Made by a program: the position numbers and the translations under genes. This document shows, one piece after another, positions 29,734-32,181 of a stretch of 64,000 bases of DNA. The notes below the pieces were generated by a model. That model was not told where the DNA came from. It saw only the letters and a list, made by a program, of their open reading frames with translations, and made no database searches. The stretch is taken from NCBI GenBank assembly GCA_964057225.1, contig OZ059899.1, positions 7,812,001-7,876,000 of the forward strand. Reading direction: 5' to 3'. This DNA comes from Auanema rhodensis. Taxonomy: Eukaryota > Animalia > Nematoda. Every line of letters starts with the position of its first letter. Within the stretch, counting starts at the first letter, position 1.

Positions 29734-32181
29734 TCAGCACCAACACGAGCCTTCTTCAGTTTGAATTTGTCGTTGCTTAATAGGGTCCATGTTGACAATT
29801 GTTGCTAAATAGTAAAGTAATTATGATTTTTAATTTTTAAAAATTTATAATAAATAGGATTATAAATAATAAAGCACAAAACCAGGCAACTTTTGTGCTT
29901 TAAAGGACAATAAATAATGCAAAGCAGATTTTAAAGGCGGTTAATAATTCCCTTAACCGGTAATAGATGTGTATCATATACATATGTGAATCGTGCAGAA
30001 AAAACAAGTAAAAAATGTTAGGGATGAAGACATAAAGCAAAAATTAGATGCTAGTGTTATCACAGGCTCCGTGCTAGATACATTCTGAAGATTAGAGAAC
30101 CACCACATCACCACATCACAAACACGTTCCTAACAACTACAACCCTTTTCTTCCTCGTGTGCTTGTGCATCAGATGGTAGTTTAATCTCTTCCGCTGTAA
30201 ATTGCAAACACAAATCAGGCATTAGTAGTAGCACACGTCAGCCAGTTGGAATCAATCACGATATCAACATGCAACCTGTATAAAGATTTCGGAAGACACT
30301 TACTGTTGTCATGGCGTTCATCCTCCTTGATGATTCCAGGTAAAGCCCCAGCAATTCTGCGGAACAACTGAACTTTTTAATTAAAAAAAAATAGAAAACA
30401 GTTCAACGCACCTGCTTAACATTATATCCAGCTTTAGCAGATGTTTCAATAAACATAACATTAAGCTCTTTAGCTTTTCTTTCTCCCTCATCAGTTGTGA
30501 CTTGGCTGAAATTTTTACATGATTAATGGTTTTGACTAAGGCAGTTACCGTTTATCGCTCAAATCAGTCTTGTTTCCAACGAGCATGATAATTACGTCGC
30601 TACCACGTTCAGTACGGACATCATCAATCCATTTAGAAGTTTGATGGAATGAGTTTGAATCTGAAATTTAAATAACAATAGTATACAGGAATCAGAAAAC
30701 ACACGAAACACAGTGTTACATTAAGTTATTTGTAATAAAATCTGTCAAGTAATCGGTTGTAATGGAAAAAAGGAGAAAAATAGCTGAACTTCTTACTAAA
30801 GCTTCAGACCAATTTGAAAACGCTAATTATGATATAGTTAATATAATGGGTTATCCTAAATAATAAAATAAAATTTAGATTAATTCGAAACAAAAAAAAG
30901 AAGAAATCGAAAAGGAAATATTAATCTCCAAAGAAATACTTGAAAAACAACACAGGTAAGATAGATGAACAAAACAAAGCTTAATTTGCCATTTAAGGAA
31001 AGAGAAGATTGATGATTTAGAAATGAGAATGAAAGTTGTGGCATTTAATATGATCGAAATGGATCACAACATGAGAAGTAGTACATTACTGTTAGTTATA
31101 ATAAACTAACTAAATATGTAAATATAATACAGGCCCACGAATAAAATTGATAATTTTGGCATTGATCCTTGTTCTTTAAATAATTCTAGTTCAGTAAGTA
31201 ATTTGAATAATAACTAAACATGAAATTAAAAATTCAGGAAGATTCTAAAGCAGAATGCTCAACACAAAGTTTCGAGGAAGTTAAAGGTACATAATTTTCA
31301 ATTTTGCTCATTTATATATATATATATATATCAATAAAACAATATTCAAAGCAGATAATATTGAAATAAATAAGAAAATTAACACAAGGTATTTTTGGAA
31401 TTAAAATATAATTTATTTTTTTCGTGAATATCGGTATAGGAAGCTAAATGAAAAAAAAGAGCAACTACTTCAAAAATCAAACTTGAAGTGAAAACAATGA
31501 AGTGAAATGATAAAATGATTTTTTTTAATTTAGAAAAAGAAAAGACGGAAAAATAATGTCGCTATATCAAAAAATGAGAGCCAAAATGTTCAAAAAGCGA
31601 GCCAAAAAAACCAAGTTAAAATGTTAGTAATTTTAAAAAAGTTCAATTATCGTCCAAATAATCAAACTTACAAAGAGAGTTGCAGAAAGAAGAATATAGA
31701 AGCCTTTAAATTAAGAAATAATCAAAAAAGGTTATCTACTAATATTTGAATAGATAAAGTTATAAAACAATATGATAAACAAAGAACCAATAGAATAAAC
31801 CAACTTACTTGTAATGTCGTAAACAACAACAGCAACAGTTGAATCCCTAATATATGATGGAATCAAAGAACGGAATCGTTCTTGACCAGCAGTATCCCAC
31901 AATTGAAGACGGACCTAAAGTATAAAATATCTTGTGAATATTCGATTAATAATCTTTACAGTTCTGTCTTCGAGGTACATAGTTTTACTCAAGAAATCGA
32001 TTCCAATTGTTGCTTGGTATGTATTGTCGAAAGAATCGTACATAAAACGAGTGATGAGAGATGTTTTTCCAACTAAAACAATTTTTGTAAAAATTTGATG
32101 AAAATATTAAAAAATACCACTCTGTTCTCCGAGAAAGACAAGCTTGAATTTCTTCAGTGGGTTACCAAAGTCAGAAGCCAT
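29734..32181 (-). CDS. rab-6.2: Rab6 small GTPase, RAB-6.2 type; distal last exon 29734-29804
   Basis: [84 protein letters not shown]. The C-terminus [18 protein letters not shown] resembles C. elegans RAB-6.2. TTTCAG trans-splice-type acceptor just before the ATG. Confidence 0.93.
30130..30194 (-). CDS. rab-6.2: Alternative proximal terminal exon of rab-6.2 encoding [21 protein letters not shown]
   Basis: TTACAG acceptor, same phase (1) as the donor at 30303, and an open frame ending in a CxC prenylation motif followed by TAG. Confidence 0.75.
30762..31627 (+). CDS. Nested antisense gene in rab-6.2 intron 3; K/E-rich, coiled-coil-like protein of about 190 aa, ~8 short exons
   Basis: Successive ~40-65-nt GT-AG introns join [25 protein letters not shown] / [25 protein letters not shown] / [31 protein letters not shown] / [21 protein letters not shown] / [16 protein letters not shown] / ... 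/ [30 protein letters not shown]. Confidence 0.65.

Follow-up and report, generated by a model that had tools for sequence, protein, structure and literature searches.

On the minus strand of a 64-kilobase (kb) window of the nematode Auanema rhodensis (contig OZ059899.1; by 'window' we mean the whole stretch of DNA analyzed, 64,000 nucleotides (nt) long) we saw a Rab6 gene, the rab-6.2 orthologue as judged by sequence and synteny, that ends in two different ways. One donor is joined to either of two competing acceptors; 390 nt separate these 3′ splice sites, and both belong to a single terminal exon whose 3′ end is common to the two forms. The proximal site leads to a tail segment, A, and the distal site to a tail segment, B; each segment has its own stop codon directly after a CxC cysteine motif. 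That both tails are made from one gene via alternative splicing was confirmed by assembled RNA sequences.

The RNA material came from the only public study found to contain this stretch, with four runs (designated X1 to X4), used as Logan assembled contigs; the run label, 'RNA?', is a guess. The contigs represent cDNA because every predicted intron that they reach is skipped at CT..AC, which is GT..AG on the strand of the gene. The joint 30304>29804, leading to tail B, was present in all four runs, with contig depths of 455, 198, 176 and 160. The joint 30304>30194, leading to tail A, was present in three of the four (X2, X3 and X4; depths 54.6, 48.8 and 43.4), as exact 449-nt contigs. At the joints the contigs were exact, without mismatches. 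The X1 contig that matches the A form ends 4 nt into the intron. In X2, the depths of the two forms add up to the depth of the exons upstream (54.6 + 198.3 = 252.9 versus 246.1), and X3 and X4 behave alike. Judged by k-mer contig depth, the share of the A form is about 21–22% in X2–X4 and about 15% in X1 (69.2 versus 455.4); contig depths are means, and these shares are rough. B is the major form, and A makes up about a fifth of the whole-sample RNA.

Upstream of the tail the exons were joined constitutively in all contigs (exon 1 lies beyond their reach), with variation confined to the tail. We considered intron retention as the origin of the exon A coverage and rejected it: the 109-nt intron removed in the A form (30195–30303, minus strand; it also forms the beginning of the 499-nt B-form intron) is uncovered in X2–X4, and the sequence just downstream of it is covered.

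The donor shared by both tails (aca|GTAAGT, a strong site) closes exon 6 (30304–30367) in phase 1; RNA contigs join this exon to 30194 and to 29804. Segment A (30130–30194) begins at the proximal acceptor, aatttacag|C at 30194, and codes for 21 amino acids (aa) ending in GCSC; the RNA joint and homologous exons in other species support it. Segment B (29734–29804) begins at the distal acceptor, ctatttag|C at 29804, and codes for 23 aa ending in SCWC; the evidence for it is the RNA joint in four of four runs and conservation in clade IV and clade V nematodes. All these elements, i.e. the coordinates, both acceptors, the phase-1 donor and both tails with CxC before the stop, had been proposed in a sequence-only reading of the window, and all of them hold, as does its proposal that the two tails splice to a single donor. 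The same reading had pointed to splicing into 30194 and to the presence of a GCSC exon in related nematodes as the places where it could fail; RNA does splice into 30194, and a homologous exon A is kept in relatives.

Both tails, GCSC and SCWC, carry a predicted C-terminal CxC prenylation motif. It had been argued that two such ends would be unlikely to occur by chance, and a scan of the window bears this out. Open stretches of at least 18 codons ending in CxC and a stop number five in all six frames of the window (128 kb of strand); two of the five are tails A and B, located on the strand of the gene directly after the Rab6 donor. Two CxC tails following one donor by chance are thus unlikely.

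The two tails were each said to resemble a different Rab6 type, and tails in databases agree. Tail B is the RAB-6.2 tail of the Caenorhabditis elegans type (e.g. NVVTMDPIRQRQIVTDEGSCWC in Caenorhabditis nigoni); it matches tails of the form ..MDPI[KR]QRQI..GSCWC, unlike the rab-6.1-type tail ending in ..QCPC. Tail A belongs to the canonical Rab6 type of animals, IKL...GCSC.

As to the architecture of the transcripts, the contig carrying A runs unbroken from 30194 to 29775 in all four runs: it passes the A stop and the next 325 nt, enters exon B and merges with the B path at 29775. The 325 nt (29805–30129), covered by contigs in four of four runs, form 3′ untranslated region (UTR) in the A form and the remainder of the intron in the B form. 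No AATAAA occurs in these 325 nt, where the only related hexamers are ATTAAA (29834) and TATAAA (29849), just before acceptor B. Further downstream, the contigs run about 270 nt past 29400, to about 29130 (in X1 and X2), and we take 29130–29733 to be a shared 3′ UTR extending to the likely poly(A) site. An AATAAA is located at 29150–29145, 15–20 nt before the contig end; further copies are present at 29648 and 29566. Because the A contig continues into B and no AATAAA intervenes, we characterize the arrangement as an alternative 3′ splice site rather than as two last exons.

The sequence-only reading had spoken of two alternative last exons. Its protein outcome was right; separate poly(A) sites, which that wording implies, are unsupported, as the A form continues into exon B instead of ending in a terminal exon with a 3′ UTR and poly(A) site of its own. 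If these were true alternative last exons, A transcripts would finish upstream of B, at a separate poly(A) site, with splicing competing with cleavage and polyadenylation. This design is used by CDC42 (PMC6411841), the ATTAAA and TATAAA hexamers stand 30–45 nt before acceptor B, and RNA ends are not visible in contigs. The unbroken path from A into B was nevertheless seen in every run, at a depth similar to that of the A junction, and the canonical signal is absent; we consider this explanation unlikely.

We then compared the tail region among nematodes. Relatives were reached by a search of a representative library with exon 4, and subsequently with full-length relatives (P0082:1-184, P0265, P0270) as queries; a whole-length search was dominated by vertebrate models with both A/A′ exons, and a tail-only search with P0265 gave four matches. 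The annotated protein of Auanema sp. JU1783 (P0253) has an A-type tail, TEEIKLKHEEQTQAAESSACSC. The locus of Pristionchus fissidentatus has both segments, each with an acceptor, in phase 1 and with its own stop; here, A reads ASEIKLTAEAETKNSQGCSC before the stop, and B ends in 22 aa and a stop. Both homeologs of Diploscapter pachys also have the two segments, with NNGDNVIPLTAEQITPSQSSRCANC before the A stop and ..TINMDPIRQRQIVTDEGSCFC before the B stop; the annotation gives the B tail to one homeolog and the A tail to the other. Over their whole length these homeologs share 96% identity; exon A differs by one synonymous substitution and exon B by none, too little for a test of selection to be informative.

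Exon A was not found at the loci of C. nigoni, Caenorhabditis auriculariae, Ancylostoma ceylanicum and Aphelenchoides besseyi, where a short last intron (about 130 nt in C. auriculariae) leads to B only. Neither was it found in Toxocara canis, where a 7-kb intron precedes the sole tail exon, MQEVRLSDAPIGQVHMQEGGCSC.

With these species in view, acceptor 30194 could be seen as a cryptic site in a long last intron, used by splicing noise to give a minor product that lacks a separate function. The A form is indeed minor (about 15–22%), Caenorhabditis, Ancylostoma, Aphelenchoides and Toxocara do without exon A, and the sequence of tail A evolves fast. Still, three genera of old divergence have kept an exon that is in frame, shares the phase and places a terminal cysteine motif right before the stop; the annotations of Auanema sp. 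JU1783 and of one D. pachys homeolog give A as the tail; frames of this kind number just five in 128 kb of strand sequence; and a use of 15–22% far exceeds typical noise. We regard noise as an improbable explanation.

The P. fissidentatus model P0265 carries the A and B tails in tandem, via a donor T|GTTGAT whose GT lies two bases before the A stop. One could propose from it that exon A is a cassette exon also in A. rhodensis, where GT at 30134–30133 (T|GTTAGG), in the same place two bases before the A stop, would join A to B with the frame kept, giving a long tail with an internal GCS and a CWC end; a comparable tandem is found in an Anopheles christyi model. But the four runs gave no spliced A-to-B joint and did give unspliced A–B continuity, Diploscapter has no GT at that place, and P0265 is a prediction only, which makes a cassette very improbable.

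Apart from these loci, several nematode Rab6 models, P0291 (Nippostrongylus), P0289 (Cooperia), P0082 (Gnathostoma) and P0345 (Anisakis), read through the last donor or have odd tails without a cysteine motif; they probably represent a mis-annotated last intron.

Compared with a generic Rab6 tail, both A. rhodensis tails score above shuffled controls (z = 3–5). Tail A resembles the start and the end of the Toxocara tail, and tail B its middle. From such sequence comparisons, the A/B pair most likely originated by tandem duplication of the tail exon in a clade V rhabditid ancestor. The simplest reading of the species distribution would be that the two-tail arrangement is ancestral in clade V rhabditids, with A lost at least in Caenorhabditis and in strongylids.

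The intron between exon 6 and segment A carries three candidate regulatory motifs on the sense strand; for two of them, TGCATG (30273–30268) and ACTAAT (30226–30221), the positions had been given in the sequence-only reading and are confirmed. UGCAUG (30268–30273, minus strand) is a candidate FOX-1/ASD-1 (RBFOX) site, located 30 nt from the donor and 79 nt from acceptor A (shuffling P = 0.03). GUGUG (30232–30236, minus strand), a SUP-12-type motif 42 nt before acceptor A, and ACUAAU (30221–30226, minus strand), a STAR-type or branch-like motif 32 nt before it, are weak candidates. TGCATG is a rare motif, with 0.16 copies per kb of the window.

Between exon 6 and A, TGCATG was present in all three genera: one copy in the Auanema gene, one in Pristionchus and two in Diploscapter (at +37 from the donor and at −56 from acceptor A). 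The probability of finding at least one copy upon shuffling was 0.03 for the Auanema gene, 0.11 for Pristionchus and 0.07 for Diploscapter. In the four species without A that were checked, no TGCATG was found within 400 nt of exon 6. GUGUG is present at −61 to −65 in Pristionchus, with none in Diploscapter; ACTAAT is present at −37 in Diploscapter, with none in Pristionchus.

In the C. elegans gene egl-15, the first alternative exon (5B) is repressed, and the downstream one favoured, by FOX-1/ASD-1 on UGCAUG and SUP-12 on GUGUG, both motifs lying in the intron upstream (PMC2777236). The likeness to rab-6.2 consists in UGCAUG (and, in two of the three genera here, GUGUG) in the intron before the first alternative segment; the differences are that the egl-15 exons are internal and mutually exclusive, with regulation shown genetically, whereas the rab-6.2 segments are terminal, with a regulation that we infer from motif conservation. 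By this analogy, the motif tentatively suggests RBFOX control of the choice between A and B; such control is possible, if less likely than not. The tissue-regulated switch proposed in the sequence-only reading is accordingly a hypothesis, with which the conserved UGCAUG would be compatible.

As a whole, the explanation that we favour, and hold to be quite probable, is that of a rab-6.2 gene with one donor, two competing 3′ splice sites and two CxC tails, with a putative UGCAUG-mediated repression of A and an origin of the pair by duplication. Use of acceptor 30194 gives tail A with its stop at 30130, exon B being carried within a 3′ UTR of roughly 1 kb; use of acceptor 29804 removes A and gives the nematode RAB-6.2 tail B ending in SCWC. 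The two predicted proteins have an identical GTPase core and differ only in a hypervariable linker of roughly 20 residues, which would help to set membrane targeting and the choice of partners. With CxC at both ends, both forms are predicted to be doubly geranylgeranylated. FOX-1/ASD-1-type proteins bound to the intronic UGCAUG might, by analogy with egl-15 exon 5B, block acceptor A in some tissues, leading there to B.

Several observations weigh against this explanation. All the RNA support comes from a single study, from four runs read as assembled contigs, in which start, end, strand and tissue are unreadable; moreover, for X1, the run of greatest depth, no proximal joint is reported. Some A transcripts may end at a poly(A) site of their own, served by the ATTAAA at 29834 or the TATAAA at 29849. 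The A tail of Diploscapter ends in CANC, not in CxC; because of this ending, and because A tails diverge fast, the constraint on A appears to be weaker than that on B. UGCAUG is a short motif, and the argument from it draws on three lineages, of which one lacks GUGUG and another ACUAAY.

The gene as a whole has seven parts on the minus strand, six shared exons and the alternative tail segment, with complete frames of 205 and 207 aa. Exon 1 (32118–32181; ATG at 32181) is joined to exon 2 in frame. A tttcag at 32185–32190 (minus strand), 4 nt before the ATG, is a likely trans-splice acceptor; it borders exon 1, which is beyond the RNA contigs. Exon 2 (31960–32072) codes for the end of the P-loop and switch I, and exon 3 (31809–31914) for switch II; they are followed by exon 4 (30549–30660) and exon 5 (30412–30505). 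Each of the exons 2–5 matches the Pfam Ras family (PF00071). The joint 31914|31960 is present in RNA contigs, and the joints 30660|31809, 30505|30549 and 30367|30412 are present in four of four runs. Matches of exon 2 to PDB place the gene in Rab6: the best are all Rab6, with E of about 1e-19, and the next family is Rab7, at 4e-6. The protein core and the six tail residues that follow it agree in full with the annotated Rab6 protein of Auanema sp. JU1783 (P0253); to Rab6 of other nematodes the core is nearly identical.

Upstream of rab-6.2, in divergent orientation on the plus strand, we found an acyl-CoA dehydrogenase exon (32946–33053; Pfam Acyl-CoA_dh_N, E = 5e-5). An acyl-CoA dehydrogenase neighbour is also present at the rab-6.2 loci of C. 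nigoni, C. auriculariae, D. pachys, P. fissidentatus and Aphelenchoides besseyi. Because this neighbour is kept, and because the RAB-6.2 of Caenorhabditis and strongylids has tail B, the gene is identified by its sequence context as the syntenic orthologue of rab-6.2.

Intron 3, 1148 nt long, holds observations of a different kind. In X1 only, two low-depth contigs (depth 5–8) lie within it, at 30693–31160 on the plus strand; in one of them 42 nt are skipped at 30953|30996, with plus-strand GT..AG. This suggests a weak antisense or nested spliced transcript in intron 3. The intron also contains a (TA)n microsatellite at 31303–31343, passed over as a repeat in the mapping of RNA contigs.

A constant G domain followed by alternative lipidated tails is the design of K-Ras 4A/4B. 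The vertebrate CDC42 gene, with a ubiquitous and a brain form, is similarly built: as in rab-6.2, a constant G domain continues into either of two 3′ coding segments, which each provide a hypervariable end and a lipidation motif, and the CDC42 tails set different localisation (PMC10883850, PMC6411841). CDC42 differs from rab-6.2 in belonging to the Rho family, in having tails with different lipids (CaaX versus CCaX with palmitate) and in having mRNAs with different 3′ UTRs; in rab-6.2 both tails end in CxC, for which a double geranylgeranyl is expected, and the RNA shares one 3′ end.

Within the Rab6 subfamily itself, vertebrate RAB6A and RAB6A′ are two proteins made by splicing from one gene with a duplicated exon (PMC4758642), in which respects they are like rab-6.2. 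The vertebrate exons are an internal, mutually exclusive pair; the choice between them alters three residues near switch II and leaves the tail the same (PMC4758642). In rab-6.2 the G domain is constant and the tail alone changes; the A and B segments are not an internal exon pair. The sequence-only reading was therefore correct in setting this system apart from the RAB6A/A′ switch: here the tail varies and the upstream exons are constitutive.

Only one splice form is given for C. elegans rab-6.2 (T25G12.4) in the literature (PMC3504004); this agrees with the lack of exon A in Caenorhabditis. Caenorhabditis species have a second gene, rab-6.1, with yet another tail; tail B corresponds to the rab-6.2 tail.

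Arthropod Rab6 entries in databases also show two tails after the same junction, both with CxC ends (MTEVVL..GGCAC versus TVDLRP..GCIC or GCMC). The Logan transcripts P0259 and P0260 are identical over 186 residues and differ in the tails alone; the same alternative-tail pattern is seen in the Rab6 'isoform X1/X3' entries of Penaeus, Panulirus and Portunus (as well as in proteins P0261/P0262, P0256, P0307 and P0043). An Anopheles christyi model has both Rab6 tails in tandem. An ancient orthology of A and B between nematodes and arthropods was considered and is not supported, with alignment scores of 8.1 for A–A versus 8.8 for A–B, and of 12.0 for B–A versus 13.8 for B–B. On these sequences, the tail pairs of arthropods and nematodes are probably of independent origin.

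No description for nematodes or other invertebrates came up when the literature was searched for tail variants of rab-6.2 or Rab6 and for Rab GTPases with alternative last exons. The sequence-only reading had known of no earlier description, and to this extent it was borne out; single-isoform database models with tail A do exist in sister taxa. We conclude that, as far as these searches go, the choice of tails in rab-6.2 is undescribed, its design being already known from other small GTPases (CDC42, K-Ras).

A wider interpretation, which we offer as speculation and think rather doubtful, is that the A/B choice is an ancestral, RBFOX-controlled, tissue-specific switch of Rab6 targeting in clade V. 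A would then be the canonical Golgi-type tail, and B a nematode invention used where FOX-1/ASD-1 is active (e.g. in neurons and muscle); Caenorhabditis would have kept only B, with rab-6.1 instead of A. In the same speculative vein, protostome Rab6 genes may have repeatedly evolved alternative lipid-anchor tails, a layer of regulation that would have gone unrecognised.

The hypervariable tail of a Rab is one determinant of its membrane residence and of its partners. The biology of Rab6 isoforms has so far been that of RAB6A, A′, B and C in vertebrates and of rab-6.1 and rab-6.2 in C. elegans. The practical gain from the present finding is modest, and its interest moderate, chiefly for specialists in Rab6 and in nematode splicing. 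Because the G domain is identical in the two forms, a splice change confined to the tail is a clean natural experiment on the role of the Rab6 tail, and the hosts of the switch include worms that can be edited, Pristionchus and Auanema. In this character, C. elegans represents a derived state, and the single-isoform annotations of the sister species conceal a second form.

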